Origin: Octopus bimaculoides
Taxonomy: Eukaryota
DNA length: 50,609 nt
Direction: 5' to 3'
Assembly (NCBI RefSeq): GCF_001194135.2
Contig: NC_068993.1
Location: 22,538,286-22,588,894 of the forward strand
Positions 10,807-50,147 of this stretch are shown piece by piece (the first letter of the stretch is position 1; each line of letters begins with the position of its first letter). The notes below the pieces were generated by a model. The model did no database searches. It was not told the origin of the DNA and saw nothing but the letters and a program-made list of their open reading frames with translations. The translations under genes and the position numbers were made by a program.

Positions 10807-10981
10807 CTTTCCAAGGTGCATCACCTGACCGCTACAGTACTCAATAAGACATACAACACCAGCTACTAGAATACCAGTAACTAAAAGAAAGAACACACCA
10901 GCAACGTTCTCGAATTGTAACTCGGATGTCTCCACAGCCGAAGCTTTGTTCATATCTGGACACATTCGATTATTCCACCAT
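10807..10981 (-). CDS. iGluR exon: end of S2 and M4 (R|WWNNRMCPD...LQFENVAGVFFLLVTGILVAGVVCLIEYCSGQVMHLGK)
   Basis: Acceptor ttttattatacacag|A and donor AAG|GTAACG; 175 nt, phase 2 to 0. The WW..C and ..ENVAGVF M4 motifs are typical of iGluRs. Confidence 0.92.
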
Positions 10982-16589: not shown

Positions 16590-18200
16590 TAGTTCAAATT
16601 TGCGGAAAAACAAAAGACGAAGACAGGTGTGAAATCGATAAGTAGGTGTATTAGATTAACGCACAGGGAAAATGGGAGAGTCTTTTACGTTCCGAGTCTA
16701 CGTTCTTCGACAGAAAAGATTAAGAAGTAAAAATGAGGAGAGAATGAAAAAAGAAAGAAAAAAAAACGGACAGAGAAAAACTTGGCAAGATGACTATAAA
16801 AAAGAGGTTGATTGAAGAGAAGATGATAATAACAAGAGTTTGAAAGAAAGGGAGATAATAATGGTGATCCCAAAAAACTAAAGTGCGCAAACGTGTATGT
16901 GTATGTGAGAATGGTTTGTGTGAGTGTGTACGTGTCTATGTGTGAATGGAGGTGCATGAGTCTGACGTGTGTGTGTAACGTGTATGTATGTGCGTTGTGT
17001 GTTGCAGATGATGTATGCATGCTTTTTCAAGTGGTGTGTGCACATGTGTACATATGTGTGTGTGTGAGTGTCACCAAATAGTGTGCATGTGTATAGTGTA
17101 TGTTTGTGGACGAAAGCTATCTTTTTCTATGCGTGTGTTTATGCATGTTGTGTGTGTGTGTATATTGTCTGTGTTCAGGTATTATGTGCTTGTGTGAGTG
17201 TAGGAGTGTGCATGATGATGTGTGGTGTGTGTACTGGGCTAAACAGTGTGTGTATGACTGCTCTTATAATGGTATAATGGTACAGTGTTATGTGTGGTGA
17301 CGCTATTGATGAATGTGTGTGGGTGTCTGGATGATGGTGTGTGGTGTGGGTACTGAGAAATGGTCAGTGCTAGTATGTATGGAGTGGGAAGGTGTTGTGT
17401 GTGTGTTTGTAATGGTGTGTAAAGAGAGTAATGAGTTGAACAATGTGTATGAGTATGTGTAAAATGGTGTGTGTGTGGTGAAAGTACTGAGGTGGGAAGT
17501 ATGCAGGTTTGTAGGTGGAGGGGATTGTTGAATGTGAGAAGTGTGTGAGAATCCACGTGAGATTAGTGTCAGTTGAATAGAGGAGGAGAGTTGAACCCGT
17601 ATGGCGCAAAATAACGAAGTGAGAAGATTAATTCCTTCTCACGGTGAAAGCGGAAGTCTGGGTGGCCCCTGTGCAGAAAAAGTTCGAAAACAGACAAATC
17701 TTGTAGCGAATGACCAGTAGATCGCAAATGGCACGAGTTGTCTTAAACGTAATCCGTGAACCGGTCATCCAAGCGGCGTCCCGTTTGACCAATGTACAGG
17801 GAAGGACAAACTGAGTAAGGGATGCAGTAATTAAAATTACTAGATGTGCAGGTAAAGGAGTGAGTGACGTAATAGGAACGGCGATGGCTGCCTCTAAGGA
17901 TGGTGGTATTGGGTAGGTGCGACAGCGTAGGCGGGAGTAGGGGAAGAAGCCAGGCTGAGAGGCGGGGATAGGGAAGAAACTGTGGACCAGGTGGTCACGC
18001 AGGTTATGGGCTCATTTGAAGGAGGGAAGAAATAGGTTAGGGAAGATGTGCGAGGTGGAGTTGTTGAGCTGGAATCACCCGAAGGCTCGGAGAATGGTGC
18101 ATTGGAGGGTAGTGTGGAGGAGTAGTAGTCGAGGGGAAACACGAAACGGGTAAGGGTGGGGCGGGTGCGAGGAGAACGAGCAGGGCCATGTTCCACAGGT
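16590..18200 (-). mobile_element. 5'-truncated Penelope-like element: RT C-terminus, GIY-YIG endonuclease, CA-rich 3' region and terminal repeat
   Basis: Minus-strand translation with frameshifts: HNLRDHLVHS...PGFFP..R.RC; SFTCTSSNFNYCIPYSVCPSLYIGQTGRRLDDRF; HSLQDLSVFELFLHRGHPDFRFHREKELIFSLRYFAPYGFN. Confidence 0.85.
16681..16718 (-). ncRNA. Degenerate family A hammerhead
   Basis: CTTTT-CTGTCGA-A-GAAC/GTAG/ACTC-GGAA-CG-TA-AAAGA; several core and stem II changes. Confidence 0.55.
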
Positions 18201-20865: not shown

Positions 20866-21137
20866 CTGCTTTCAAGTTCATGAAGTTTTCCTGTATCACT
20901 GAGATTTAAAATAACCATAGATAAATCTTCTCGGTAAGTGGCTCCTGGTGGGACGGCAATACCAAAACCTTTCGGATCAAAACGTGGTCCGATCTCTGTT
21001 AATTCACAATCTTCAATCGATTTGTATCTACTCACTGTTGTATCCCAGAAGAACGCATAGTTACCTTCCTTAACCTTATGAAAGCCTTCAGTTGTTGTGG
21101 AAACCATTGATTCGGGATCAAGTTCTGCCATTTGAAC
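20866..21137 (-). CDS. iGluR exon: S2 lobe (VQMAELDPESMVSTTTEGFHKVKEGNYAFFWDTTVSRY...C...GFGIAVPPGATYREDLSMVILNLSDTGKLHELES)
   Basis: Acceptor tttcag|GTT and donor AG|GTGAGT; 272 nt, phase 0 to 2; canonical S2 motifs. Confidence 0.95.
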
Positions 21138-22859
21138 CTGAAATAATAATCAGTGATTTAACGACAGTTCAACTAAAATTATTTAATGGATTTAAGAGAT
21201 AACATCAAAATATCAGGAACGTGGGTATATATTGTGTTGTTAAGATGCTCAATTCGAAAAACTTTTGGTTGGTGATTCGATCATACTGCTCGGGTAAGTG
21301 TTTTATACTATATCCTCGAATTGACCATTACATTGTGAGTGAAATATGTGCGCTCGCACACACTCAAAAATATATGCATACACAGGCGAAAGATATCTTA
21401 GTGCGTATTCGTTACACTTTGAAAACTTAAGTATCTGATAAGGAGACCAATTTCTAGAAGCTATAAAATTATTTTAGAGCAAGCCTAATTATTCGTCTTC
21501 GAGCAACTGAAGAAGAACTGCGTTATGGCTTCAGTTCTAATTGCAAGGAAGAACCGCATTAGTTAAGTTCGCATTGAAGACATAAACTAGAATGTTCTGA
21601 ATAACTTGTCGACTTGTATCTAATCTCAACTTTGATAGCATGTATCTCTCGCCTTTCTCTCTCTTGCGATAACAACGAAAGATAATGACGTCCTCCTAAA
21701 GAAATATTCTCATTATATAACTTTCTTGCCTGTCTATCACTTTCTGGGAAGTTAATAAATCTATTTAATGTTATATTATAATTAAGAGGCTCTAGATTCT
21801 TGACCACGTCATACTTATAAGATCCAAATAGATCGAAATAGCAGCTATACACAAATGTAAAGGACTTTATGATTAGAAGGAAAATTAAAGGAAAGAAAAT
21901 TAATGAAACAAATATAAATGCTTAAAATATATTCTATTACTTTTACTTACGATAGAATAAATTAATATGGATTTATGAGAGTTGCTTCTATCTCACGCCA
22001 TACTGATGAACAGCTGAACGATTGAGAGATTATATAAATATATTTTTTACGCAGTAAAAATGATTTTCCTAAGAATATGTCATATGAATTTAATCTGGTT
22101 CAGTGTAATGCAGCTCTGAGACATTTATTTATTAATATAATTCATTTATTAATATAATTCATAGGTATCAGTAAATTCGGTAGTCCTGAAGAATGAAAAA
22201 TATGACGCTTCAGAAAGGGCTTTTCAGTGACGTGGTATTCTATTACCCCGGTAAGCGTGACAAAGATTCTTCTTTGTACAACTTACCCGATTTATATATA
22301 GATCCACTTGCCATGACATATATCTATACTAGATGTACCCACTGTGACCCGTTGGGTCAAAACCACTCCCAGTTGAAAATGTCGATGTGCAACGGATAAT
22401 TTAAGGCATTCTATTCAACTTTTTAAAGTCCTTGCAATTTGCCACCATCTGTTTAGTAACAGACGGTTCTTGCCAAATATAAGACAAGTCATTTCTTTTT
22501 TTTTCCTTTGTACAGAAGTCTTTCTTCCTTGTCACCAGGTCAGTCCCAAATGATCAGTACTGTTATCAAAATAGGATTTTCTTTTGAAAAGACCCACATA
22601 TACTGGGATTTTCTTTTGAGAGAGAGAGTCGAGAGATGATATCTAAAGATGCTGAATATAGAAAATACTTTGTAGTGCTTAAATAATTTGAACTTAAACT
22701 CTGAAATCTTTACTGTGGAGTGAGTTAATAAGTTAATAGGGACTAAGTGGCTAGAAGAGAAACTCAGGCAAGCAGACTAAATATCTTCAGTTTTTGTCTT
22801 CCTCTGTTTACATATATAAGTATGCATATTTTATATATCTAGCCCAATCAGTTCTAGCT

Positions 22860-23860
22860 GCTTACTCGCATCATTCTCTCTCTCTCCCACTCCCTCTATA
22901 CCACGTTGAACCGTTATTCCTAACACATTTTTCTCTCTATCTTTGTTTTTCGTTCTCTATTTTTCCCTCTCAACCCTTTCTGATGAAGAGCGTAGGCACT
23001 AAACGTCAAAGACTTTTCCATTCTTTCCGAGCGTTAAACCTATACACTTGTTTTCCTTCACCTTACTCGTTTCTCCCTCACCAGTCTTGGACTTTTATTT
23101 TCTGTAAATTTGAACTACACTGACACCTCAGTATCGCACCTAATCCGCTCCATCTGTCATTCGCTACAGCATCTGTCTGTGCTCGGACTGTCTCTGCACA
23201 GGGGCCACCCGGATACTTGCCTTCGTCGTGAACAAGAATTAATCTTCTATCTTCTTTCCTTTGTTCCTTACGGTCTCAAATTCGCCACCTCTGTTCGTCT
23301 AACACAACCCTACACAGATTCCGATACACTTCTCACATTCAACTCCCCTCCCCTCCACCCCACAACTTCACACCACCTAACTCGGCACCCTCACCACTGT
23401 TCAACAATACACATTGTTCCACTCATTACTCATATCACACACCATTACGCACACACCCACTCACACCTTTCCCACTCCATATCCGCTAGCACCAAACACC
23501 TTTCAGTTTCCACACTACGCACCTTTATCCATACACCCACACGCACTCTTCAATATCGTCACCTCACACACTTCAATTTCCTCACCACACACACACACCA
23601 CTATACGAACACCCTTACACACTGTTCAGCTCAGTATACACACCACACACACATTATGCACACTCCCACACTCACACACAATCACATACACATGTACTCA
23701 CACTCGCCTTCCCACACCATATATATTAGCACCCAATATCTACCTAACCCACTTCCTCTCAACCCATCTCACCTACCCTATCCCACCTCTCCTCACGCCG
23801 ATCCCACCACGCACCTATATATGCAGAGATATGTATGGGTCTCTGTATACTGCTTATAGT
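22860..23860 (+). mobile_element. PLE family A fragment: terminal repeat followed by endonuclease C-terminus and CA-rich region
   Basis: HSLQHLSVLGLSLHRGHPDTCLRREQELIFYLLSFVPYGLK at about 23160-23280; homologous to 16590-17730 in the opposite orientation. Confidence 0.8.
22976..23011 (+). ncRNA. Degenerate family A hammerhead
   Basis: CTTT-CTGATGA-A-GAGC/GTAG/GCAC-TAAA-CG-TC|AAAG; G12>U and one stem II mismatch. Confidence 0.6.
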
Positions 23861-25084
23861 GACAGTGACTTCTTAGACGGCCATGACCTCAGAAGATTTT
23901 GCCCCACCAGGTCATAGAGGGGAAGACCACACACTATCACCTCAGCAGTGAAAAGGTTGCAAGACGCAACGAAAATTTTAGAAAAATAAATAAGTAAATG
24001 AATGAAAACTTTACTGGTGAGTGTGTTAAACTATAAGGCACTAAAAGAGAATGACTTTCCCCAGACACAACAGTATATGTGGGTCTTTTCAAAAGAAAAT
24101 CCCCTTTTGATTACAGGACTTATCATTTGGGAGTGACCTTGTGAAAAGGAAGAAAGACTTCATACAAAGGAAAAAAAAAAAAAAAAGAAATGTCTTGTCT
24201 TACCTTTGGTAGGAACCGTCTGTTACTAAACAGATGGTGGCAAATTGCAAAGGCCTTAAAAAGTCGAATAGAATGCCTTAAGTTTTCCGTTCTCTATGCG
24301 TCACATGTCTAACTCCCATCGAAGCCAACTTACTCGTGATAATTTATCACTGGAATTGTTAGAACATCGGATGAGATGCCCTGCGGTGTTTCCGGCGGCT
24401 CTACGCGTTCTGAGTTTAAACCCTACGTAGGTACAGATGTCTAGGGTTAATCATTCGACTATAGGAGCACACCACCTTTTCGGCACTTAGGGTAAAAAGC
24501 TAAATTTAAAACCTCTATAGATAATCTGACAACGGAATGCTGAGGCTTCCTCCAATAGCTAAATGGTCGCTAAGTTTCTTGGTAAAATTGGGACAATGCC
24601 CATAAAATTAGGAGTCCTCTTGTCTGGTGAGGTTGACACAGTTCATAATCAGTCTACCCATCTTTAAATCGATGTCGGCGAGAGGTTGATGGGAATAAAG
24701 AAACCAGGGGTGGGGGTAGTGAGTGTTTCTGGTTCGAATAATGCTTGCATCAGAATAAATAGTCAAAGAGCAGGTGGTGGTGTTAAGAAGTGGTGGTGTT
24801 AGGTCACTCTTCTTCAGTCTCTTGTCTTCATCTTTACCTTTGATCTTCTGAATTTTTTGTTTTGCTTTTCTATTATTGTTTGCATTGTTGGCGTCATGGC
24901 TGTTGTTCTTTTTATTATCATTACTACTCCAGTCATGACAACCCCCCCTATCNNNNNNNNNNNNNNNCCACCACCACCACCACCACCACCACCACCATCA
25001 CTGCTATTGCTGCTGAAGAATCGTGATTTTATTTTTCCAATACAAGTGTCGATGCTAATCGATAATTAAATATTTCATTTCCAA

Positions 25085-25215
25085 ATTCTCTTTCATTCTT
25101 TAACACACACAACACTGCCAACACTACCTGTACATCACTCCCTGTACCGACTCCACCACAACCTTCAATACCGATACAGCATCGCTACCACTACACAACA
25201 TGATGTCTCAACATC
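25085..25215 (+). repeat. CAC-rich interspersed repeat, direct copy at about 28665-28805
   Basis: Both share caacactacctgtacatcac...accgatacagcatc.ctaccac.acacaaca.gatg.ctc.acatcaac.tcactac. Confidence 0.8.
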
Positions 25216-28169
25216 AACTTCACTACCGGCACCAAATCCACATCACCATTACTACTATCGAACGTCTACCATAACCTCACTACCTTTACACGCCACCATA
25301 AACTCTCTATAATACCATCACCATCACCATCACCTTTATTACAACTAAACTATAATAAAATCTCATCATCATTATCAACATCACTATACAACAGCATAAA
25401 ACCTCTGCATCTCCTTCACTATGGCTGCATATTCTAGAAAACTTTCATATTATTATCAGGAAGACAATCACTACATACCACCATAAACCTTTATCCACTC
25501 CTCATAATCAAAACTCCACATCGAGCCATAGAGATACCTGTATGACAATTTGTTTCAACCATCTTCTTGCATATGGACCCCTTTGATTCTTATTTTACTT
25601 GGGTGAAGCTTCATAGCATTTTTATACTTTAAAATATCCTAATTTAAAAGCTGCACCAAAGAGAGTTAAATAGCATGACTATAATACGTTTATAATGACT
25701 ATATGTCCCGGTGGTGTTTAATCAGAAGTTAAGGACGGATGAGAATTAATTCTGTAATGCAATCATTCTAATGTTCCAGTCTCAAGCTGAATTCCAACTG
25801 TTGGCCAATTAGTTCCAATATTCTTATCTCGACGTAAAATTAACGAAGCGAATGCAATTTACTTTATCTCTGACATCATCCGAAAAACCCCAACTAAGAT
25901 GGCTTGAATCAGCCACGGTTTACCTGCTAGAAATAGCAACCAGGATGCTTTTAAACCAGATCACAATGCTGGATGTTCAAGAACCAAATGAAAGGCAGAT
26001 TTTCAATCTCAGGATCATCCTGATTCCATAAAGGTATATGTACGTCTTTGTAGAGCAAATGTAGACTGAGATACAGAGGTCCCAGACGGACAGACAAAAT
26101 TTTGTTTTTATTAATATAAGTTGTATAAAAAATGTATTAAAATATTTTATGTATTGTAGAAGTATAACCAATCTATTTCAATTAAATTTTAACAACAAAA
26201 TCTTATATATTTCTACAAAAGAGTCATATGGACACCCTATTGAGAACCACTGCTCTATATGTGATCAGTCAGCCCCCCTGAAGTGGTGGCCATATCTGTT
26301 TCAAATCCCATTCTTCCATCTTATCTAAAGAAGGATACATTGGAAAATATAGTTATTGATAAATAAAAAGACGGGATGCTTGCATCTGGAAAGCTTTCCA
26401 TCATAGGCTTGTGCGATTATATCAGACTTGGTATTCAACACATTGGAAGTAATGCTTGCACCATACCATAATTCCGTGTCTTAGAAACTAACAACACTAT
26501 TCCTGTATCAATGATATACCTATATAAATGTGTTAACAAAATTTCAGTAGATTAATTCATTGATTTCATGTTACATAGTATCACTTCAAGCTCTTGATAT
26601 ATTTATCTAAACAGCAGACGGAAATTTGGTTTGGTATTTGTTAAGGCTCAGGGAACAGTCATATTACAGCTGGTTTTCAACCAGAAATTGGTTTATATCG
26701 ATTCTCTTTAAATATCAAGTTACGTCCATTACCTCGTATCAACATTTAAAAAATTATGTCTAATTGATTTGTTAGTAAGGTTCAAATTAACAATTTACTA
26801 AATTACGAAAATTTGTGGTACATTATTCTCTATGCAACAGTCTAGACGTTACATTCTAATCTACAGTACACACCAGCCATTGAAATGAAACAAGTACAAA
26901 TAATTTTAAAAGTTTGTTTTCTGTAGTTTATCATCCATCAGTGATGTCATGTTTACTATTTAGCATACAGATAAAACCAAAGGGACTCGAGTACACAACT
27001 AACCACATTCACAAAAGAATGAAAATTTAGCACTGCAAGTCAACAAATCGAGTATTGAGTGAGAGATACACAAATTAATGAATTAACATTAACAAAATCT
27101 AACGCCTCATGATGCATCACATAAGCAAAACGAGCAGAGATGTTTGTCGCCCATTCTGGTTATAAACAGTCTTTGGCTCTGTGTAGAATAATAGTATAGC
27201 ACAGCTAAGCTATTCATTTCAAAATAAATGAGCAAAACAACTCTAGTTTAAATAATTTTCTCTCGAGAAAACATTAAAATGTTTTCTTTTAAAAGAAAAT
27301 AACCCCCAAAATATGATCTACTGCTTAAATGTGGCTTTGACGTGGCCATGATATGTAAAACGGATGCAGAGTACGGCATATGCGCTGGCAAATTCTCCCA
27401 AACTGAGTAGGTTCTAAGCCAAAAATATCCTTCACTTTTTAGTAGTGGTCATCTAAAGTGCAAAGATAAACGTGGAATCCATCGACAAAAAGTTTCTCAA
27501 TGTTTGTATAAGCACAAGAAGACAATACCAAAAAGGATTGACTAGAAAGATGTGATTGTTGCGGAATCGGTGGCAATCTTTTGCAGTTGTATCCCCTAAT
27601 CTTGCTTGTCTTATTCTAGAAGTACCACAGAAGATGGTCGGTGATCAATGTGTATCGATCACTCCCTGACAAAAAGGAATTCACAAAGTAAATCTTTGCC
27701 ATCAGCATATTTTCTGGCTGACTTTTTTATAAGCATCCAATGATGAAAGGATATGGATGACTGGAGCAATTTATGGTGAAAATGGGGTGTTCAAGTACCG
27801 ATGTGCAGTTGGTAGCAGATGTCATAATCACCTTTCAGAGATGTGTGATTATATTGAAATCCTGTCCTGCATTTTATCTATAATTCCTTTTTGTGATCAC
27901 TACTGCTACACCAAATTAAGAGGACCTTAGAAAATGTAGGTAAATCATCAGAAGATACTCCTGTACCTGAGCGTAAAACTGCAGGTCAACTTCAAAATAT
28001 ATCTTTCGCTTAGTAGAACGTTACATTCAAGACGCTGGTTTTGCCTCGAAAATAGATCAGGTGAAAAATCCCCACCAACGCCTACAGATGAGTGATTCAC
28101 GACATACTCCATTCTTAGGTAATAATTTCATCTCCACCTGTGTACCTGTTTTTAATGGAGTTGAAAATA

Positions 28170-29350
28170 TTAAGGAACAATTCTTCTTTCAAGACAGCAC
28201 TATTCTCTGCAAGGTACAAACAAAAGACAAGCTCATGATACTCGAGGAAATCGTTCCTAGAATCGAAAAGACAATCGATTAATGCTTCTGGGGCTGAGTT
28301 AAGAACATGGACTCATGATTACAATCAAGCTCCAGCTTCCAAAGCATTTCAGAACCAAGTCGATATCTATAGACGCCACGTTTTATTAGTGTAAAACGAA
28401 TAGCTGATCTATCCCTTGAATAAAACTCAACGTCCAGCAGAAACAAAAAATCAGATTTTAATAGGTCAAACGATTATGTCAAACTCACTCAGAAAGATCC
28501 AAAGCAGTTTGTGCCATGGAAAAGCTAAGAGCTTTAAAAAAATCAAAAATTCTATGCAAAAAAAAAAGAAAAAAAGAAAAAAAAGCAAACAAAACAAATG
28601 GCTGTACGAACCTATACACTTTTCTATAGAAAAACAACTGGCAATGTCAGCTGCCTCATTCCTTAACACACTCACCACTGCCAACATTCCAACACTACCT
28701 GTACATCACCACTCTCTATACCGATACCACCACAACTTTCACCACCGATACAGCATCACTACCACCACACAACAAGATGCCTCGACATCAACCTCACTAC
28801 TGTCACCAAGTGCTCCTACAAACAAATAAGCTATTCAGATTTCGATATCACTATTTCGAACTCTCTTTCCGAATGTGTAGAACAATTCCGATATCTTGGA
28901 AGTTCCCTCTCGATAAAATGCAGATCCAGGATGGAGTTGAAGAAAGAGTTTTGTGTTGGCTGTGTTGCATGTGGAAGACTTTCTCTTCAGAAATAAAAAC
29001 TTAAAGTAAGAAACCAATATCTTCGTGTGCTAGGCTATCGTTCTCTCAGTTTTCCTCGTTAGATGTAAGCCATGGAATCTTTACCATCGAGATACGATAA
29101 AACATGAGCTCTTTCACCAGCAGAAGCTCTGATCAGTTATGAATATGTTATGGTATGGTTAGGCGCAAAAATTGTAATCCCTGAGAAAGTTCAACTCAAC
29201 AATATTGACTATCATAATAAAATATCATTCCAGATGGACATACATCTGCAGACTTTCCACCCATTTTTCTAAATTGGACTGAACTCGGAAAAAGAACCGA
29301 TGGTTTCCTTCTGAAGCGTTACACGGTTCAACACAATACTCTGAATCAAT
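28170..29350 (+). pseudogene. Highly decayed RTE-type LINE reverse transcriptase relic, interrupted by the CAC-rich repeat
   Basis: ILCKV...LEEIVPRIEKTID*CFWG resembles the ..ILPESQCGFR motif; VEQFRYLGSSLS...CVACGRL resembles V..F.YLGS...AFGRL. Many stops. Confidence 0.5.
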
Positions 29351-30397
29351 TGCTCTGCATCCATAATAATTATTTTTATCAACTACTTATAAGAGAATAT
29401 GAAGAAAGCTAACCTGGAAAGAAGCAAATAGATGGCAAAATCTGGCGTCAAACGATCTCGACACATGCAAAACTTCTCGAATAAATATGCTACAGAAATA
29501 CCTAAAAGAATGAAAGGGATAAACAACAAAAACAAGAATATCCGTCAAGCGCAACAACATCCAACTTCGTCCAGTAAGGAAAACTTGGTTGATCTTCTTA
29601 GCCATCAAGAAAGAAGAAACCAAACACTAAGTAAACACAAGGGCCGACGAGTAAGAAAACATAGAAAATGAAAGTAGTGTATTTCGTAGATCTATCAGTA
29701 AATTCCCTGTGTACTGAGTTTTTAAACTAATTTTAATTTCTGGTTGATGCAATGTCTCTGCAGCTCTTTTTCGAATGTGAAATGAAGCAACATCTCATAA
29801 TCGCATTATCAGCTACATGATTTCTTGTAACTAAGCAAGAAGCAATGATTTAGTAAAGTAATTCTAACTGGGAATCGAAACTAGTTCGGTACTCGCCTCA
29901 TTGATCGTAATACAGAGATTTTTTTCAAAAGTAGCGGAATTCATGCGAATTGTAAAATTAGTAATCCGGAAGACCGTAAAAGTAATCCAAAAGTAATCTT
30001 AACACAAAAATAAAACGAAACACTGAATCCTCAGTCGGGATCATCGTTGTGTATAATAACTGCCCTACCCTCCCTTATAATTCTATATAAATTAGCTATA
30101 ATACTTGATACATGGTATCAAAAACTCTCATCAAAAGTAAATGTGAAGTAAGTGAAGTCAAATACTTCTAGCCGGGAGTTGAAAAAGACTTACAAAGTAA
30201 TCTCTCTTGAAACAAAGCTCTGCAGTTTACTTTTTACGAATAAAAGGACATTAAAAGTTGCTGTATTAGGAGATTTGGGGTTAAGTGGAAATATAAGGAG
30301 GAAACATTCAAGAAGTATTCTTTTCTTTCGTTGCTGCATCTAATTCACAAGAGTGGCTTGCAGGTCAGTGGACGTGCAAAAGAAGGTATTATTCTTT

Positions 30398-30608
30398 TCT
30401 GTTCTAGGCACAGAGCCCAAAATTTTTGGGGAGGGGACCAGTCGATTAGATCGACCCCAGTGCGCAACTGGTACTTAATTTATCGACCCCTAAAGGATGA
30501 AATGCAAAGTCGATCTCGGCGGAATTTGAACTCAGAACGTAAAGACAGACGAAATACCGCTGAGCATTTCGCCTGCTGTGCTAACGTTTCTGTCAGCTCA
30601 TCGACTTA
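30398..30608 (-). mobile_element. tRNA-derived SINE, near full length
   Basis: Minus strand has a B-box-like GAGTTCAAATTCC, then GTCGA(T/C)TTTGC(A/C)TTTCATCCTT..GGGGTCGATAAATTAAGTACCAG and 3' ...GTGCCTAGA. At least 6 homologues in the window. Confidence 0.85.
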
Positions 30609-30654
30609 AAAAGCTATTATTGTCATCTTCATTATTGTCATATTCCCATACTTC

Positions 30655-30810
30655 TCCTTCCTATGTGCCTTTTTTGTACTTCGTTCTCTTCCTTTTCTTC
30701 TCCTCTTTCTCATTGTCAGCATCATCATCATCACCACGACCATGACCTTCCTCATCCACAACATAACATGATTATAATCTCCATCATCCCATCGCCGACA
30801 TACCAAGATG
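30655..30810. repeat. Low-complexity (CAT/CTT)-rich tract; similar tract at 31100-31330
   Basis: Seen directly. Confidence 0.75.
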
Positions 30811-31466
30811 ACAACAACCTTCTCATCATCCTCAAGGGCGTGGCATTTAATCTTTCTCGGAATCCCCCCTTCCCCGATAAGGCCTTCACCTACTTTAATA
30901 GCAACCAAAGAGTGAACGTCTGAAATTATTGAGGAATCCTAAATTTAAAAAGAGACGGGATGGAGACGCCTAGAATACATTTGATCAAGTCCTTTCGAGC
31001 AGAGCTGACCTGTGCTAAACTACAACATGAACAACATGAATAGTACTGCCACTGTAACTACAATTACCACCATCCTGAACAAGATCAACACCATTCTCGC
31101 CCCATCATCACTCCAATAGTAATATCATCATACCCATTATATTAGTTATTATTATGTTGACGACGACGACGATAACGACCACGGCCTCCCCTACCATCAT
31201 CATCATCATCATCCTCATCACCACTACCATGGCCAGCGCTGCCGCAACGATCCCACTCCGTCTACCACAACCACTGCTGTCGTAGTCGTCAGTTATAATC
31301 GCTTTCCTCCTCGTCATATTCGTTATTATTGACAGTTGAATAATCAAATAAATTCTGACAGAAATTATAATTAAATGTAAAAATATGAACAAAAATGAAT
31401 AAATACATTAAATAATTGAAGAGAGAAAAAAAATAAAGAAAACGGCAGTAAAACTCATTAACTCAC

Positions 31467-31720
31467 CCACATCTTTGCGAATGTTTCGATTTTCGTATTC
31501 TTAAAGAAAGCCATGACACCACTGTTTTTGACAGTGCCGTATTTGATTTTGGTTTGTTTTGGAAGATCAGAAATTGTTTTGATGGGAGTATTGATCTTCT
31601 TTACTGTAAGGAAGGCAGCTAGATTAGCAGTGTACGAAGAGATGAGGATGAGAGCAAAAAACCACCAAGCGCTGGTAAGGATACGTCCGGGCACTGTGTT
31701 TGGGGAAGCATCTGTGTTTC
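31467..31720 (-). CDS. iGluR exon: pore-loop end, M3 and start of S2 (G|[39 protein letters not shown]...[15 protein letters not shown]...FAKMW)
   Basis: SYTANLAAF gate motif; acceptor ctctaccag|GA and donor TGG|GTGAGT; 254 nt, phase 1 to 0. Confidence 0.97.
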
Positions 31721-32242
31721 CTGGTAGAGTAGAAGGTGAAAACAATTATGGAAAGGATTTTGTGTAAAAAAAAAAAAAATATATATAAATGTATTATAAC
31801 TTTGGACAAACTAAACTGTTTCTTGCAGATATAATAAACTTTCTAAACATGTCTACCTAGCTGGATTTATAGAGAAGTCAGTAATTCAGTATAAAGAAGA
31901 AAAAAATGTAGTGCTCCAAACAAAAAGCGGACTGTTTATGCAACAAAATCAAAAGGAATTTGCACATGTAGGTCTAGTGGTTAGAATTTCGCGCTTTCAN
32001 NNNNNNNNNNNNNNNNNNNNNNNNNNNNNNNNNNNNNNNNNNNNNNNNNNNNNNNNNNNNNNNNNNNNNNNNNNNNNNNNNNNNNNNNNNNNNNNNNNNN
32101 NNNNNNNNNNNNNNNNNNNNNNNNNNNNNNNNNNNNNNNNNNNNNNNNNNNNNNNNNNNNNNNNNNNNNNNNNNNNNNNNNNNNNNNNNNNNNNNNNNNN
32201 NNNNNNNNNNNNNNNNNNNNNNNNNNNNNNNNNNNNNNNNNN

Positions 32243-32290
<48 letters not shown>

Positions 32291-32391
32291 CGTGTGTGTG
32301 TGTGTGCGTGTGTATGTGTGTGTGTGTGTGCGTGAGTATGTGTGTGTGTGAGTGCGTGTGTATAAATGTGTGTGTATGTCTGTATTTGTCC

Positions 32392-32530
32392 TCCCCCACC
32401 ATCGCTTGACAACCGATGCTGGTGTGCTTATGTCCCCGTAACTTAGCTGTTCAGCAAAAGAGACCGACAGAATAAGTACTAGGCTTACAAAGAATACATC
32501 TTTCGACTAAAACCCTTAAAGGCGGTACTT
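32392..32530 (+). mobile_element. 3' part of a second SINE family
   Basis: ccccaccatcgcttgacaaccgatgctggtgtg...gaataagtactaggcttacaaagaata; recognised as a common octopod repeat tail from memory only. Confidence 0.5.
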
Positions 32531-33395
32531 AAAAAAATAAAGAATAGCAGAATGTAGTGTAAATGATTGTTGAAGTGCAAAATAGACTAAGCGTGATTAT
32601 AAAGTTATTTGTACGGAACTACACTCAAGCGGCCAGCGCTATTTGAGTATAGTTCAATGAAATTGTACATCAGACACGATAAATTAATGGAATGACTCAA
32701 GCTGGAACTCTAATATTATCTGTTGATTTTAACGAAGCTATTGAGTTTTATTTTAATTTAGTAGTAGAATTATCGTGTACACAATATTTCCTTCCTCTTT
32801 ACTACTTAATCAAACGCATTGGCATACACATACATTTGAAGTTAGTGTTTTCAAAATTAAATAAAAAAAAGACACAGCTAGCATTAATAGACGTATAGTA
32901 TACATTAGAGATTTTTGAATGAGTTAAAAACTGAGCGGAATGTTTATAGACGGAAGAGGGGGTTGTAAATAAAAATAAAAATAAAAAATGACAATTCTTA
33001 AAAAATAGCCAAGGTAACTGAAAATTGTTTTACAAGTGTCAAAAATGAATAAATGAAGAATACACACACACACACATACACACACACTCACACACACACA
33101 GTGTATATCATGCGTGAACAGTTAGATGTACGATTGCTACTTTTGATTTTAGAGCTCTTCATATATTTTCATCATCCAGTCTGCTTCCAGTATAGTACTT
33201 ATGTTACAGCTAAGTAGTACAATTGGTTATGATGTACAGAGCAAGTTTATCGTTTCTCTTTTCCTCTCCCCCTCTCCCCATATATATATATACAGAGAGA
33301 GAGAGAGAGAGAGAGGGTGGAGAGNNNNNNNNNNNNNNNNNNNNNNNNNNNNNNNNNNNNNNNNNNNNNNNNNNNNNNNNNNNNNNNNNNNNNNN

Positions 33396-33463
<68 letters not shown>

Positions 33464-33540
33464 TGATAGATTGACAAACAGCCTTACGCGTTACACAGAT
33501 TCAGAGATGCTTATATTTATATATACAGAGATATTCTTGC

Positions 33541-33844
33541 CTTGTAGTAAAGATCCAAAGATGAACCAGAAGCTCTCCCTGAACGAAATCGAAGGATAAT
33601 CCTTTTTCTTACGCATGCCCAGTTTCTCCAGGAAGTACAGTATTACACTGACGACAATAAATGCCCCGAATGTGCATATCCAAACAGGTGGCGAGAGGGG
33701 GTTGAGGAACTCAAAATATGATGTTTCTAGTTTAGTTTTCTTCATGATTACACTAATGTAGCGAGTCATAAAAGGTTTAGTGAAATCCACTGCCTCCTCG
33801 CGCTGTGAATTAATGCTGAGGGGCGATACTGTCATAGTGGCGTT
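33541..33844 (-). CDS. iGluR exon: end of S1, M1 and M2 (NATMTVSPLSINSQREEAVDFTKPFM...FLNPLSPPVW...SFRESFWFIFGSLLQ|G)
   Basis: Acceptor ttttag|AAC; 304 nt. The frame of the next exon requires a phase 1 end at CAA G|GCAAG, a GC donor. Confidence 0.93.
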
Positions 33845-34189
33845 CTAAAATAAAGAGAAGACATTAATCATTTAGTGAAGTGAGAAAAAGATGAGGCAGA
33901 ACGTGAGATATTTACATAGATAAACGAAGTGAGGGTTAAACAAGAAATATTAGCTAGAAAAATTTGATAGCCATCAAAATAACAAATTAAATGGAATAAA
34001 AAGATGTAAAATAAATATTAGGGTTACCGAAAAGTAATCTCATATTTCATGTCATGAACTCAAATGAGCATAAAACATATCGTTCATATATTTATTCATT
34101 CAAAATATAAGGGCCTCGTAAGCAGCAAAATACGGCCCACAAATCAGGTTCTTTAAAGTGAAAAGTTTTTGGTGTGCCTTTTCCACATC

Positions 34190-34620
34190 CATTATTCTTC
34201 TACATGTCTTTCCTCTTGTAGAATGCTGAAGTGACCAGAATGGTGCTAGGTGTTAACAGTAGGGAGTTGGAGGTAGAGCTTCCCAGCCTAATGAATATAT
34301 TTTTGCACGGATTATTTTCGCTGAATGTGGGCTTGTATTATCATGTTACAGAACGATTACATTTCTGTTAACTGGAGTTCACGAAGTATGCACTTCACTT
34401 TTCTGTACACTTACTCAATCTGTTGATGAACTTGTAAAGTGAACCCGGCTTTATTAAGCTCTCAGAATAAGTACCAGACATTTTGACACAGTTTTTACTG
34501 TGTCACTATAGAGCATAGTTCATCTTTCTGGTCGAAACCCAACTAAATGATCGAAATAACCGATTTCGCATCTGCTGAAGCATCGTTGGCATTTTCAAAC
34601 ACTCGCACCATCAAGATATA
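34190..34620 (-). mobile_element. Mariner (Tc1/mariner) transposase relic
   Basis: Minus strand RNVIVL*HDNTSPHSAKIIRAKIYSLGWEALPPTPYC*HLAP matches the mariner HDNARPH...LGWEVLPHPPYSPDLAP block. Confidence 0.8.
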
Positions 34621-35171
34621 CATTACATATTTTTCTCTTGTACTTGTGGAATTTTTGCACAAAGGAAATTAGTAAAGCATGCCATACCCAATATGCAGCT
34701 TACTTAAGTTATTGTCTCCCAACAGGAAAACTGTAATTGTTATAAAATATGACGGAGGGTAATAGAACTCCTGCAAGGTAAAGTGCCCTGATGCTCAGTC
34801 AATGCACATAATTGTGTACATACATACTGACAGTCAGCGTAAACGGCCAAATGTGGTGGTCGTGATACCCGTAAACCGTCGACGGTTTCAGCTTTTACTC
34901 CGAAGCCTCTTCAGTAGGGTCGGCAAAACTCGTCCGATTCCGGATAAGATCGCTTCCTGTATATATGTCTACACCATAGAAATCTATGGATAATTTATGG
35001 AATCGCTAAAGTGTATACAAATAATTAAATTAGGCAGCGGTTTAGCAATGTATGAGAGCACTTTAGCTCTTATTTCTAGCATTTTAGGTGTTCTAACACA
35101 ATGTCATATTTAATGGCAATTATAGTTTCCCTCTGTGTGTGTGTGTGTGTAATATTTTGGACTAATAGGTA

Positions 35172-35247
35172 TACATATATACATACATACATACATACAT
35201 ACATGCATACATACATACATACATACATACATGCATACATACATGCA
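35172..35247. repeat. (TACA)n microsatellite
   Basis: Seen directly. Confidence 0.95.
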
Positions 35248-37989
35248 TCGTGTGTCCACATTAATATTTAATCATTAAATCCATGCTCGTTGGTTGACTT
35301 CAAAGACACCTTTGATTGGCTTGTTATACCAAAACTATCGTTGGTATAGTGTCAAAAATGTTTTCTTGAAAAACGAATATTCTTTTCGGTACCTCTGATA
35401 GAATAGAATTTACAATACAAAATGTGCAAGAATACTGCATAGAGTACATAATCTATACAATTAAACGATTTAAATGAACGATTGATGTACTTAATTTTAC
35501 TCTCTATTTTAAAGTCTTTCTGTGTTTGAATCAACGTATATCCTGTATTCAACTGACCCATCTCCAGACAATAAATCTATAGCAAATGTGGTCTCTAGCC
35601 TCAAGCATTTACGATGGAGTGGTATTTGATATTGAGTGGTATTGGATTGGAAATAGGCCCGTGTCGTCAGCACTTTTCTAAAGGATCACAACCACGAGAG
35701 GACCAGTAACGAGTCAACGAGGGAATTTCTACGGAATCCATCGCCATGCTAGAAATAATAGCAGTTAAATATTCCTCAACTTCCTCCATTGCGTCTTATA
35801 TGACAAGACATTTAAAAAATATAGTGATTATACTTAAAAGACTGGATGGTCATTATCTGAATTCTATTCATCACAAGTCTCCCCAACTAGGGTTGACTTC
35901 TAGCTAAACAATAATACAGACTAACGGGATACTCATCAAATATTCAAAGTTGTTTCTGCTAATGATAATTATAACGGTTAATCATTTGGCCCTTTAGCTC
36001 CTACTTACAAATAGGTGGATTGAACTATTGAGAATAAGTGTAATGCCAGTATCAATATACAAACCGCTATCCTCTTGCTTGGTTGCACAGTATCCTATTC
36101 ATTCGATTTATGAAACTCTCACTAAATCGATAGGATTGTCTATTTCACTTTATCGTATTCAGATATTTCTTCTCAAAGCACATCAGTATACATCACACTT
36201 CGACTTTCATCAGTAATCTGTCTACTTAACAGTTTACAGATAAAAAATTATCTATTTGACAGTTTGCTAAGACAGCCTTTTAATCAAAATTATTTAACAA
36301 TCAATGTTCAGTCAGTAAATTATGTCCTAGCTTCCTCTCTAGCTAGGCTTCTGCACCTATAAACGAGCCAGATATTTCAAACTAACTCGATGCACCATCA
36401 TTATTTCTGTCAATTACTCTGATATGTCGCACTCTGGGCTCTGTTTTAAATACTTTATCTTGTCTTACTTTCTCTGAATTACAACCCATTGAAAACCTGG
36501 AAACGTTCAAGAAGATATACTAATCTTATATTCTAGCATTAAAACTTTTTTCTAATAACAAATAAGATGTAAATCCAGTCTATAAATAGATTAGTCAATT
36601 AAACTATAATCATATAACTAGGGAATTCCACGGTTATCTTGAAAGTTATAAAATTAGCAGAAGTTTATGCAGAACTATCATAATTTCTCATGAAAGTTAT
36701 CAATTGTTGAAGCAATTGATGCTTTAGATAATGTAAATAACATGTAGACTGTATTGAAAGGTCAGTCTTTACACTTGTCGCTTCTTCCAACTCGTGAAGT
36801 GAACGTGCTCGAGGAAATGTTACGCACGATTTTCTTGAGAAACACCTGATCCACTCTTGTTTCTTTTTTATTAAGATTTTGTTATGAAAATTATTAAAAA
36901 TGTTTTCTAAGAATAATGTATATAAGGAAAAGTTTAAGTAATCTTAACTCTAAAAGGAAATTGAAGACATGATCTATTTATATCATTATTCTATTAGACT
37001 ACACAAAAAACGCTTTAACAAATCATAACACGATAAACTACGATACATGGGGAAAGTGGAGCTGGCTGAACTTAAACCTACACTAGTAATGAATGAAGTA
37101 TAATAGTTTGCTCTCCGTGTTATGATTCCCATCAAAATATATCAGTTACATATATTAAATTTAATTTTAAATATTGATTTTCCAGTCAATAAATCTATAA
37201 GTCACTTCTTTGATTCCATTTCATTGTTTAACAGCCAATTGTTTACAGAGACAATAAATGTTGTGTGTGTAACTGTTTAAGCATTCCATTTCATCCCACG
37301 GTTAAAGCATTACATACGTAGACAGTAACAGAATAGTGTAATACATTTCATATGAAAGCAGTATTTTATCTGCACTAGAAGGTGGGAATTGTTATGATAA
37401 GCTCCTCAATCGCATTGCGTCATGTGATAGAATAAATTAAGGTCGCACGTGAAAGTGTTCACTCGGAACAAAGCTACATGGAATAGGAAGAAATATTGTT
37501 TATCATTAGATAAACAATATATCATAGATACTTGTGGTCGTAAAACAGACTTTATCTTTTGACTTCCATGATATCATCAGTATTTTGACACATATGTGAA
37601 AGAGATATGTTTTACTTGATAAAATGTTTATCATAGAGGTGAGCACAATGCAAGCGACATCCGCAAGTTTCAATATCTGATAACCGTTTTACGTCTCTCA
37701 TGTGCTGTTTACCTAAGCATAGCTATCATGGGTTTTCTTTGTTGCTATCGTCAGGAGATAAAACTTACATACTTTATCAGAAATAGGAAACGATACGATT
37801 TCTTTTGTTGACAAGCGCAGAAGATTCCGACGATCCAGGTTCACCTCTCTGACGAATCTGTTTATTTCATTTATGTCACTAATGCCTTTCTACAAAAGTC
37901 CCTCTCAATCGAATATGAACACCGCAGTAAAGGAACTGTTTGTTAAAATTTTCAAGATCACCACAACAAGGTAAATAACTCTAAGCACT

Positions 37990-38147
37990 CTTTCTACTAT
38001 AAGCACAACGCCTGAAAATTTTTTGAGAAAGGACCTAGTCTATTACATCCACCCAAGGATGAAAGTCAACGTCGATCTCAGCGGAGATTGATTTCAGAAC
38101 TAAACATTTCGTCCGATCCGCTAACTATTCTGCCAGCTTGCTGCATT
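37990..38147 (-). mobile_element. Internally deleted, diverged SINE copy
   Basis: Homologous by eye to 30398-30608. Confidence 0.7.
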
Positions 38148-38175
38148 AACAATAATTATAATAGCAAAATATTCT

Positions 38176-38367
38176 GTTCTACTCTAGGCACAAGGCCCGA
38201 AATTTTGGGGGGAGGGGGCTTGTCGATTAGATCGACCCTAGTACGCAACTGGTACTTAAATTATCGACCCCGATGGATGAAATGTAAAGTCGACCTCGTC
38301 GGAATTTGAACTCAGAACATAAAGACAGACGAAATACCGCTAACGTTCCTGTCAGCTCGCCGCCTTA
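38176..38367 (-). mobile_element. tRNA-derived SINE next to an (AAT)n tract (38378-38447)
   Basis: Close match to 30398-30608; the minus-strand 5' end reads AGGCGGCGAGCTGACAG. Confidence 0.85.
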
Positions 38368-38374
38368 TATCACA

Positions 38375-38448
<74 letters not shown>

Positions 38449-38581
38449 TTAATTATTTATGTCTTACTTTAGCAACAAGAACATTAACAGTAACAAATAC
38501 AAAGATATTCATAAAGGAAATAAAAATGCCGCAAAAATAAATGAAGCCAATATATAAAAAGCAAGATTATATCATAATTAC

Positions 38582-38785
38582 CCCAGCAAGGACTTCGCCA
38601 ATCATTCCATTCCAGTCTCCGTTGTCCATTTTAGCGCCAAAGTTTCCGTCGCCAACGAGATACAAATCATATTCAAAACCCAAGCGTTTCGATACGACAT
38701 CCATTAAATCAACCGCGAAACCTCTAAACCGGTCGTTTCCGTATCGTTTTTCGTAATCGTCTTTATACATAGTGAATGGCTTTTC
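38582..38785 (-). CDS. iGluR exon: S1 (EKPFTMYKDD...RFRGFAVDLMDVVSKRLGFEYDLYLVGDGNFGAKMDNGDWNGMIGEVLAG)
   Basis: Acceptor tttttttccag|GAA and donor GGG|GTAATT; 204 nt, phase 0 to 0; GF..DL and WNGMIGE motifs. Confidence 0.96.
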
Positions 38786-40195: not shown

Positions 40196-40315
40196 CAAGA
40201 TAGAGACCACTTTCACTCTGCGTCCCTTTAAAGGAAACATATATGTGATATTCGGATGGATTTTACGTTGATACACATGAAACTGTTTGGAAGTAGTAGA
40301 ATTCCAGATTGCAAT
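40196..40315 (-). CDS. iGluR exon: ATD-S1 linker (IAIWNSTTSKQFHVYQRKIHPNITYMFPLKGRRVKVVSIL)
   Basis: Acceptor ttttcag|ATT and donor TTG|GTAAG; 120 nt, phase 0 to 0. Joins to EKPF to give the usual V..ILE.PF S1 start. Confidence 0.88.
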
Positions 40316-41207: not shown

Positions 41208-41312
41208 TTTTTGTGTCATTTCCCCAAAAACTGCTGTAAAGTATAGATTAATACCTTTTCTTTTCCCTCTTTTGCTTAAGTGCATACATCCAGTTTCCAA
41301 ATGTTTCTTAAA
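41208..41312 (-). CDS. iGluR exon: ATD end (FKKHLETGCMHLSKRGKRKGINLYFTAVFGEMTQK)
   Basis: Acceptor tgctttgctttcag|TTT and donor AAA|GTAAGT; 105 nt, phase 0 to 0, open. Confidence 0.8.
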
Positions 41313-42753: not shown

Positions 42754-42990
42754 CTTCTGTAGTTTCCGTTTAGTTTTCTCCCTCATTTCCTCGATGTTAG
42801 GATATCGTTTCAATGATATAGATGCGTTCTTCAGCATTTCAACTATATCTGAAACCACTGCCCGTGGATAACTTTTAGTGTTACTCAAGGTATCATCACT
42901 ATGACCCTCTCTTAACGGTAAATAACTGAGAACAGTGAAATTGGTGTTCATGGCCACAAAGGAACGTAGGGTTGAGCTTATATAACCATC
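42754..42990 (-). CDS. iGluR exon: ATD (DGYISSTLRSFVAMNTNFTVLSYLPL...YPRAVVSDIVEMLKNAS...KTKRKLQK)
   Basis: Acceptor ttcttttccttatcag|GAT and donor AAG|GTAACG; 237 nt open, phase 0 to 0. Assignment rests on splice signals and phase rather than motifs. Confidence 0.75.
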
Positions 42991-45430: not shown

Positions 45431-45454
45431 GTGAAAGCCCTGTCCGAAAAGATA

Positions 45455-49056: not shown

Positions 49057-49091
49057 NNNNNNNNNNNNNNNNNNNNNNNNNNTAAAGTGTG

Positions 49092-50025: not shown

Positions 50026-50147
50026 NNNNNNNNNNNNNNNNNNNNNNNNNNNNNNNNNNNNNNNNNNNNNNNNNNNNNNNNNNNNNNNNNNNNNNNNNNN
50101 NNNNNNNNNNNNNNNNNNNNNNNNNNNNNNNNNNNNNNNNNNNNNNN

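Follow-up and report, generated by a model that had tools for sequence, protein, structure and literature searches.

Described receptors related to the locus

Ionotropic glutamate receptors (iGluRs) that respond to ligands other than glutamate are found in many clades. Among the delta receptors, those of invertebrates are gated by gamma-aminobutyric acid (GABA; Rosano et al. 2024), and vertebrate GluD1 and GluD2 bind D-serine and glycine. An uncharacterised clade of AKDF (AMPA, kainate, delta and Phi) receptors of mollusc, annelid, cephalochordate and Ptychodera origin, sister to the AMPA, kainate and Phi classes together, was described as 'group II' by Singh et al. 2025 (PMC12226733). Zeng et al. 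2021 (PMC8437780) reported subclasses of Phi and a class found only in molluscs, Zeta, and predicted glycine binding for some scallop AKDF genes that belong to neither the AMPA nor the kainate class. In Aplysia, GluR8 was listed under AMPA and GluR6 as an orphan (Greer et al. 2017). The subject of this report is a gene in a 50,609 nt stretch of Octopus bimaculoides DNA (NCBI RefSeq assembly GCF_001194135.2, contig NC_068993.1; coordinates 22538286 to 22588894), the whole of which is referred to as the window. The gene is carried on the minus strand and is an orthologue of Aplysia GluR8 and of Pecten XP_033742742.

Among solved structures the best matches to the encoded protein were the AMPA and kainate receptors GluA2 and GluK2/3 (40-41 % identity), with which it shares the order and length of the domains with almost no insertions or deletions, Q at the Q/R site, D at the +4 position and the sequence preceding M1, which is almost identical to that in kainate receptors. 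However, the pocket motifs G-S/A-T and L/M-E of these receptors are replaced by S-G-V and W-D. Delta receptors share the alphaF motif S-x-V/L, the W-D pair, the Q at the Q/R site and membership of the AKDF subfamily, but they form a separate clade (~36 % identity) and have Y450, Y732 and A/G478 where F, F and P are found here. GluN1 has many of the same pocket residues, but belongs to another subfamily (~32 % identity), has N in place of the pore Q and S688 in place of Gly, and includes a long insert in S1 that is absent here. In its position as sister to AMPA, kainate and Phi with delta branching outside, and in its occurrence in molluscs and annelids, the lineage resembles group II and the GluF/Zeta receptors of Zeng et al., though the scallop GluF proteins have G or V at position 653 in contrast to the S653 of the Pecten orthologue.

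A reading of the letters of the window alone (the sequence-only reading) had proposed an AMPA/kainate-like receptor between positions 20866 and 38785 with a ligand pocket of the GluN1/GluD type that is possibly not gated by glutamate. The analysis reported here bore out the pocket but not the class, and suggests that the subunit belongs to a separate AKDF lineage that has retained an old pocket and binds a small neutral amino acid.

Receptor family and channel core

The spliced core of the protein matched solved GluA2 (E = 1.8e-102) and GluK3 (E = 1e-100), and the Pfam families Lig_chan (132-133 bits) and Lig_chan-Glu_bd (115-122 bits) were both detected well over their cut-offs. As E-values close to 1e-100 are combined with scores above the Pfam thresholds, the likeness is far beyond chance. 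All of the parts that define the iGluR superfamily were present, namely the S1 and S2 lobes, M1, a re-entrant M2, M3 with the SYTANLAAF motif, and M4, in a full-length alignment to GluA2 and GluK3. These Pfam matches, together with the orthologues described below, agree with the earlier assignment to an iGluR subunit of a mollusc-type organism.

The SYTANLAAF motif is intact, the Q/R site is occupied by Q and followed at +4 by D, M1 to M4 and both S2 cysteines are present, and every column that is invariant across 26 diverse iGluRs is retained. An AlphaFold2 model (mean predicted local distance difference test score of 77) was used in a Foldseek search, which returned solely structures of AMPA/kainate ligand-binding and transmembrane domains, with TM-scores of 0.6-0.7; both results bear on the fold and do not discriminate between types of ligand. 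The gene is an intact iGluR subunit gene, of which the window covers the part that encodes the latter half of the N-terminal domain and all that follows as far as M4, and the channel core looks functional as judged from these residues.

The ligand pocket

Pocket residues were mapped using a HMMER alignment to rat GluA2 (9mrk) and a multiple alignment of 229 sequences, and are numbered as in mature GluA2. On the S1 side, P478 and R485 are unchanged, with the replacements Y450F and T480S. Those on the S2 side are G653S, S654G, T655V, L704W and E705D, and further changes are L650V, M708V and, at the hinge, Y732F. Identity with GluN1 extends to 11 of 16 pocket columns, and with GluA2 to 4 of 16. 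GluN1 has F, P, T, R, V, S-S-V, W-D, V and F at these columns, and its glycine-site contacts F484, P516, T518, R523, S688, V689, W731 and D732 correspond to F, P, S, R, G, V, W and D in the window protein. Identical sites therefore include F484, P516, R523, V689, W731, D732 and the hinge F, and the hydroxyl of Thr518 is kept as Ser. The GluD2 and GluN1 sequences used as baits were almost identical or identical to chains of solved structures (6lu9 and 9jnn, in that order).

In the structures of the ligand-binding domains of GluA2, GluN1 and GluD2, the alpha-carboxylate and amine of whichever amino acid is bound are anchored by R485, the backbone amides at 480 and 654, P478, the hydroxyl at 480 and an acidic residue at 705, and the gamma-carboxylate of glutamate is accommodated by the T655 hydroxyl and the space beside L704. 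V689 and W731 abolish this second site in GluN1, where the S688 contact is made by a backbone amide. The window protein was found to retain the anchoring set (R485, S480, P478 and D705), and to have the gamma-carboxylate positions replaced as in GluN1 (G653S, T655V and L704W) along with Y450F and Y732F.

The residues F, S, R, G, V and W-D that the sequence-only reading had placed at the GluA2 contact positions were recovered in both alignments, and the motifs it had used for comparison (TVKQSSV and AFIWD in GluN1, and GTVLDSAV and AFVWD in GluD2) are correct when set against the sequences of solved structures. Its conclusions that the pocket carries a GluN1/GluD-type signature and that the region around M1 is kainate-like (FLNPLSPPVW), likewise agree with the alignments and, for the pocket, with conservation throughout the orthogroup.

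In every clade member with at least ~45 % identity to the window protein, position 653 is S or T, position 655 is V, I or T, and positions 704-705 are W-D, and the mollusc core additionally keeps F450, S480, G654 and F732. The W-D pair was present in none of 180 sampled AMPA/kainate proteins, nearly all of which have G-[S/A]-T and L/M-E. As the signature is conserved over several phyla, it is a stable and selected property of the lineage rather than a sequencing error or a one-off change. In the wider clade, two paralogues from Owenia fusiformis have T-Y-C and F-D replacing S-G-V and W-D, and the bulky Tyr at 654 might fill the pocket. The Owenia Tyr recalls the Tyr653 amphioxus epsilon subunits that are predicted not to bind amino acids.

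Orthologues and sister group

The proteins nearest to the window protein, with 69-72 % identity over the core, were from Pomacea, Pecten (XP_033742742), Lymnaea, Sinanodonta, Mactra, Candidula and Aplysia, the last named 'glutamate receptor 8'. No protein with more than 81 % identity was found in the two databases searched, and looking up the exact exon B ORF gave no hit. Identity to gastropods and to bivalves was the same (69-72 %), and gastropod and bivalve members share 74-80 % with each other, which places the window protein within molluscs but just outside that pair. The low GC content, the long introns and the microsatellites might point to a cephalopod. These orthologues come from other classes of mollusc, and have the same pocket (F, S, R, S-G-V/I, W-D and F), the same pore motif and the same kainate-like sequence before M1. 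In the Aplysia literature, GluR8 is filed as 'AMPA'. Further members were identified in Plakobranchus and Elysia (GluR8), Ostrea edulis (51 %), the annelid Capitella (CAPTEDRAFT_92293; 54 %) and the nemerteans Tubulanus and Lineus, with the annelid and nemertean members sharing 51-54 % identity with the window protein.

A looser sister set includes Aplysia GluR6 (NP_001191542), an Octopus protein (A0A0L8I6N7), a protein from Nucella, two from Owenia and more Tubulanus paralogues. This GluR6-like group is also restricted to lophotrochozoans and has a W-D pocket, with S-Q-T/I at the alphaF positions. However, its members share only ~41-43 % identity with the window protein and have R at the Q/R site, and some have Y at 450 and 732. 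AMPA and kainate receptors followed with 37-43 % identity. The two Aplysia W-D paralogues, GluR8 and GluR6, are each recorded on a contig 1,058,179 bp long, and may thus be neighbours on one scaffold, possibly tandem duplicates.

Placement among receptor classes

Neighbour-joining trees with Kimura distances were constructed from sets of 229, 74 and 102 taxa and rooted on GluN1. The references were solved GluA2, GluK3, GluD2 and GluN1 with, from the alignment of Ramos-Vicente et al., GluD1_Hsa, two Saccoglossus deltas and three amphioxus Phi rows. The outgroup sampling consisted of one NMDA sequence and a few epsilon sequences (Trichoplax and amphioxus epsilon-type rows), and the mollusc deltas, such as oyster CraGluD and Lottia delta, were left out.

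This phylogeny, which the sequence-only reading had suggested as a check and which was carried out by neighbour-joining, placed the lineage outside AMPA, kainate and delta. The core clade was monophyletic (82-83 % bootstrap support), and monophyly without it was recovered for AMPA (88-96 %), kainate (100 %; reduced set), AMPA and kainate together (93-99 %) and delta (79-91 %; no mollusc delta in the set). The clade joined AMPA, kainate and Phi against delta in 74 % of bootstraps and joined delta in 12 %, while an exclusive pairing with Phi, as represented by three divergent references of ~28 % identity, was seen in 4 % of bootstraps and 9-20 % of quartets. Four-point quartets, with and without gamma correction, grouped it with AMPA/kainate in 71 % and with delta in 11 %, and the core and the GluR6-like set paired in 94 %. 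The branching order was (delta, (window clade, (Phi, (AMPA, kainate)))). The earlier view of an AMPA/kainate-like receptor that had acquired a foreign pocket was not upheld, as the lineage is a separate one within AKDF that is excluded both from AMPA and kainate together (93-99 %) and from delta (91 %).

Membership of the AKDF subfamily is indicated by the position inside the AKDF part of the rooted tree and by 36-40 % identity to the AKDF classes, compared with 32 % to GluN1 and 34 % to placozoan and amphioxus epsilon-type sequences. Within AKDF, the protein is outside the AMPA clade and has S-G-V and W-D replacing G653-S654-T655 and L704-E705. It is also outside the kainate clade, has a pocket that differs from G-S/A-T and M-E, and is kainate-like only in the pre-M1 FLNPLSPPVW. 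It shows the delta pocket (alphaF S-x-V/L with W-D) but not the delta clade; as this combination also occurs in GluN1 and the epsilon-type outgroups, the pocket does not define delta. In the case of Phi, which is reported to lack Q586, the window protein has this Q, and a reciprocal database search with amphioxus GluF2 returned 56 proteins with no special affinity to the window clade.

Assignment as a mollusc delta, which the resemblance of YAFFWD to the GluD motif YAFVWD brings to mind, was rejected by the trees and quartets. The outcome for Phi was leaning negative, with the amphioxus GluF rows ~28 % identical to everything.

The window clade thus appears to be a distinct lophotrochozoan AKDF lineage, found in molluscs, annelids and nemerteans, that is neither AMPA, kainate nor delta and has no specific affinity to Phi. 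It is probably the group II of Singh et al., and the trees do not support an AMPA placement of Aplysia GluR8. Group II includes cephalochordate and Ptychodera members, whereas no deuterostome member of the window clade was present in our sampling.

Predicted ligand and alternative explanations

The explanation that best fits the observations overall, to which we assign a probability of roughly 0.6, is that the subunit belongs to an AKDF lineage with a retained pocket and binds a small neutral amino acid rather than L-glutamate. Glycine, D-serine or alanine would be the most likely ligands, and GABA or beta-alanine are possible ones. Binding would open, or help to open, a cation channel that, judging by the Q of the Q/R site and the D at +4, is probably permeable to Ca2+ and sensitive to polyamines. 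The protein could do so in homomers, or in heteromers to which it contributes as a co-agonist subunit.

This prediction is in line with a survey of tested AKDF and epsilon receptors (PMC13648236), in which the first alphaF position is G in every glutamate-selective receptor and S in receptors for glycine or other ligands, the glycine-selective ones including some with a W-D pair. When GST in GluA2 was changed to SSV or SAV, the potency of glutamate fell sharply and alanine, glycine or D-serine became the best agonists (PMC13648236).

As GluN1, the epsilon-type outgroups, delta and the window clade all have S/V/W/D, the pocket is most simply interpreted as ancestral in AKDF. By this parsimony reasoning it would be an ancestral state that was retained and not convergence on GluN1, and the G-S-T and L-E pocket would have arisen on the AMPA+kainate stem. 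The likeness to GluN1 is probably a shared ancestral state and not the sign of common descent of a 'GluN1-type' subunit. A wider proposal, which we put forward tentatively, is that the GluR8 and GluR6 types make up an unnamed AKDF class throughout the lophotrochozoans. Its members might be excitatory cation channels gated by glycine, D-serine or alanine (or GABA), or else obligatory subunits for a co-agonist, as GluN1 is, so that certain 'AMPA-like' receptors of molluscs would depend on two transmitters.

Several points weigh against these interpretations. The Gly at the S654 position is without counterpart among characterised receptors. Ligand preference in iGluRs switches often and is poorly predicted by contact residues: GABA versus D-serine selectivity in delta could not be mapped to pocket residues (Rosano et al.), invertebrate deltas with nearly the same contacts prefer GABA and mutation of these contacts does not switch the preference, closely related amphioxus epsilon paralogues differ in agonist, and the authors of the survey warn that mutational effects are hard to predict (PMC13648236). 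The deep nodes are weak, with 49 % for the core and the GluR6-like set and 44-58 % for the position sister to AMPA+kainate, in neighbour-joining trees only. The delta profile scores slightly above those of AMPA and kainate, GluR8 was put under AMPA by Greer et al. 2017, and the match to group II was drawn from agreement in tree position and taxon content and not from accession numbers. S653-G654-V655 is encoded by AGT GGT GTC (31515-31523, minus strand). One adenosine-to-inosine edit of the AGT codon of S653 would turn it into Gly, the residue that glutamate-selective receptors have there, and mRNA editing could alter encoded residues in general; this is pure speculation, relevant only for a coleoid with heavy mRNA recoding.

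The alternative that survives best, though it is doubtful, is that the protein is a glutamate-gated subunit of the AMPA type, the unusual pocket of which still accepts L-glutamate. GluA2 and GluK3 are the best matches among solved structures, the anchors R485 and D705 are present, and the AMPA listing of GluR8 by Greer et al. has been followed in later work. In addition, some glutamate-selective receptors have the non-canonical beta10/alphaI pairs YD, ED or TD, and a G674S mutant of GluA2 was unchanged in glutamate potency (PMC13648236). However, the AMPA clade (96 %) and the AMPA+kainate clade exclude the lineage, and G653S, T655V and L704W have changed jointly and are conserved across phyla. 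G653 is found in every glutamate-selective receptor of the survey, and the SSV and SAV substitutions in GluA2 reduced glutamate potency drastically.

It is unlikely that the subunit binds its ligand without gating of its own, either as a synaptic organiser like vertebrate GluD or as an obligate partner with no activity by itself. In vertebrates, GluD binds D-serine and glycine but does not gate, GluN1 depends on GluN2 or GluN3, and both have a pocket of this type. No currents were obtained with oyster CraGluD, many spiralian AMPA receptors are obligate heteromers, and the orthologue C-termini -SFI and -SFL look like ligands for PDZ domains, from which such a function could be surmised. Against this, conservation is complete in the gating motif SYTANLAAF and at the pore residues, and homomeric gating is seen in delta, AKDF and epsilon receptors of invertebrates whose pockets are similar. 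This explanation also overlaps the neutral amino acid reading, as a ligand other than glutamate would still be implied.

Rather improbable, in view of the trees, is that the clade is the protostome branch of a class that already has a name, either an early-branching protostome delta of the CraGluD type or a lophotrochozoan Phi/Zeta. The pocket is of the delta type (S-x-V and W-D), and of the three named-class profile hidden Markov models (HMMs) that of delta scored highest (456 bits, compared with 431 for AMPA and 435 for kainate), although the profile of the clade itself scored 699 bits. Lophotrochozoan Phi and a Zeta class confined to molluscs are present in published maximum-likelihood trees (PMC8437780, PMC12226733), and Phi was represented in our trees by only three long-branch references. 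On the other side, delta is monophyletic without the clade (91 %) and joined it in only 11-12 % of quartets or bootstraps, an exclusive grouping with Phi was as rare as described above, and the Q586 that Phi is reported to lack is present. The deltas that Ramos-Vicente et al. list for Aplysia and Crassostrea are separate predicted transcripts, and automatic naming at NCBI has never applied 'delta-like' to members of the clade, though it does so for invertebrate deltas.

Finally, a pseudogene or assembly artefact, to which the draft assembly with its many N gaps, a GC splice donor, the failure to locate the 5' and 3' ends within the window and the lack of an identical protein on record might point, is hardly credible for a gene with 8 exons and 557 codons that has no stop or frameshift, keeps the invariant iGluR residues, has its gaps in introns and shares 70 % identity with orthologues from other mollusc classes.

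Significance for molluscan receptors

Both the lineage and the idea of iGluRs that do not use glutamate are already in the literature and the gene is an additional member, thus the element of surprise is limited: receptors of this kind are found in many clades, and uncharacterised mollusc and annelid AKDF clades, as well as the glycine prediction for scallop, have been published (PMC8437780, PMC12226733). However, Aplysia, Lymnaea and Octopus are standard models of synaptic plasticity whose iGluR subunits are commonly assigned to AMPA, kainate and NMDA according to their names, and work on expression in ageing sensory neurons included GluR8 among the AMPA subunits. If the wider proposal above is true, studies of learning and ageing have wrongly treated GluR8 as one of these.

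If the orthogroup binds glycine, D-serine or GABA, it would represent an excitatory protostome receptor for a transmitter normally considered inhibitory, and the occurrence of such receptors in protostomes was left open by Rosano et al. The references given in PMC2114117 include early work on vesicular glycine and on modulation by glycine in Aplysia neurons R3-R14, and on the wider proposal the orthogroup would supply the receptor missing from this long-suspected glycine signalling. The persistence of S/V/W/D in a lineage beside AMPA, kainate and Phi also suggests that the AMPA/kainate pocket is the derived one. The gene is a good and cheap candidate on which to assay, for the first time, an excitatory iGluR of the glycine, D-serine or GABA type in molluscs.

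Exons and reading frame

In a six-frame scan of the window, each of the peptides quoted in the sequence-only reading was found once, on the minus strand and at the place given for it. Exons were sought using tblastn with the closest homologues and a profile HMM built from 13 clade members, which was compared with all stop-to-stop open reading frames (ORFs) on both strands, and in combination these identified a series that is collinear on the minus strand. A core model of five exons with splice sites read by eye gave a stop-free frame of 397 aa, which was extended to at least 8 exons, from 42990 down to 10807, encoding 557 aa with no stop codon or frameshift. Of the limits proposed earlier, 20866 is exactly where exon D ends and 38785 exactly where exon A begins, but the gene reaches beyond them in both directions (42990-10807). 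The 8-exon protein aligned in one collinear BLASTP segment with residues 286-804 of the 823-aa Pecten XP_033742742 (61 % identity, 7 gap positions). The acceptor is AG in all exons, and the donor is GT in all but exon B, where it is GC.

Exon N1 (42754..42990, minus strand as for all exons and motifs below) encodes part of the N-terminal domain (DGYISSTLRSFVAMNTNFTVLS...KLQK) and has an AG acceptor and a GT donor in phase 0. It matched positions 223-292 of the clade profile (independent E-value, iE, 0.0018), is collinear with the other exons and aligns to the Pecten orthologue. Exon N2 (41208..41312; FKKHLETGCMHLSKRGKRKGINLYFTAVFGEMTQK), also in the N-terminal domain, is weakly supported, and its profile match alone is weak (iE 2.2), but it is collinear, in frame, bordered by a perfect AG acceptor and a GTAAGT donor, and included in the single BLASTP alignment to Pecten. 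The linker between the N-terminal domain and S1 is encoded by exon N3 (40196..40315; …MFPLKGRRVKVVSIL), which was detected by tblastn with the Aplysia, Lymnaea and Elysia orthologues and by the profile (iE 0.0022), and has both splice sites.

The first half of S1 is in exon A (38582..38785) and includes DGNFG (38650-38636), with F at the GluA2 Y450 position. Exon B (33541..33844) encodes the second half of S1, with PLSINSQR (33823-33800) supplying P478, S480 and R485, the pre-M1 FLNPLSPPVW (33709-33680), M1 and the start of the pore loop to the Q of the Q/R site. Its donor, TACAAG|gcaaga (33535-33541), is the sole site that gives the frame of the orthologues and the residues FGSLLQ|GNTDASP, and may either belong to a true GC-AG intron or reflect a wrong base in the draft assembly. 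Exon C (31467..31720) includes the remainder of the pore loop with D at Q/R +4, M3 with SYTANLAAF (31637-31611), and the start of S2 with a 13-residue peptide of the alphaF region (31541-31503) in which S-G-V replaces G-S-T. The second half of S2 is in exon D (20866..21137), which includes YAFFWDTTV (21059-21033) with W-D replacing L-E, the hinge KGFGIA, in which F takes the place of Y732, and the first of the S2 disulfide cysteines. Exon E (10807..10981), outside the limits proposed earlier, encodes the end of S2 (WWNNRMC) and M4, and continues into the C-terminal tail.

After M4, exon E has two in-phase GT donors 18 nt apart (CAG|gtgatg at 10825 and AAG|gtaacg at 10807), of which alignments to orthologues favour the distal one, and this could be a site of alternative splicing for the C-terminal tail. 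A search of the window for the last ~20 residues or a C-terminal exon, using the profile and a regular expression for a -[ST]-x-[ILV] stop motif, gave nothing convincing. Gastropod and bivalve orthologues end in -DSFI, -ESFL or -DSFL, similar to a PDZ-binding motif of class I, a hint of a role in synaptic scaffolding. The first ~220 profile positions, covering the signal peptide and the first half of the N-terminal domain, were not found by tblastn or profile HMM in the 7.6 kb upstream, and the gene runs off the high-coordinate end of the window.

Assembly gaps and repeats

Two N gaps (32000-32242 and 33325-33395) are within the 1.8-kb intron between exons B and C, and a third (24953-24967) is within the 10.3-kb intron between exons C and D. 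Compared with GluA2, GluK3 and the mollusc orthologues, the protein is unbroken over the B/C and C/D junctions with 0 residues missing, hence these gaps hide no coding sequence and do not affect the reading frame.

The introns flanking exon D carry two sets of inverted repeat arms, 17291-17714 with 23156-23650 and 22391-22605 with 24071-24291, which are 75-76 % and 86-89 % complementary. They coincide with strong GC skews of opposite sign (+0.36 at 16-18 kb and -0.34 at 22-24 kb) and with His/Thr-rich mechanical ORFs, and are probably copies of an interspersed repeat. Translations of the ORFs in the arms gave no match in Pfam. Upstream of the detected exons, an ORF of 157 aa (45151-45624, minus strand) encodes a Leu-rich stretch and a Cys-rich C-terminal part (…YSIPCSCVRLCKGETCRPLRIRVDKHRK…). 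An origin from a retroelement or mobile-element endonuclease was considered for this ORF and for the ORFs in the repeats, and was set aside as it was without Pfam support.

Other runs of N were found at 3304-4210, 11867-12043, 13892-14368, 47231-47314, 49057-49082 and 50026-50147. Where flanks were read, of these runs or of the two in the intron between exons B and C, they consist of the dinucleotide microsatellites (TA)n, (CA)n, (CT)n and (GA)n, which are translated as YIYIYI, HTHTHT, SLSLSL and RERERE, and as such repeats border the gaps, it is likely that the gaps are breaks induced by repeats.

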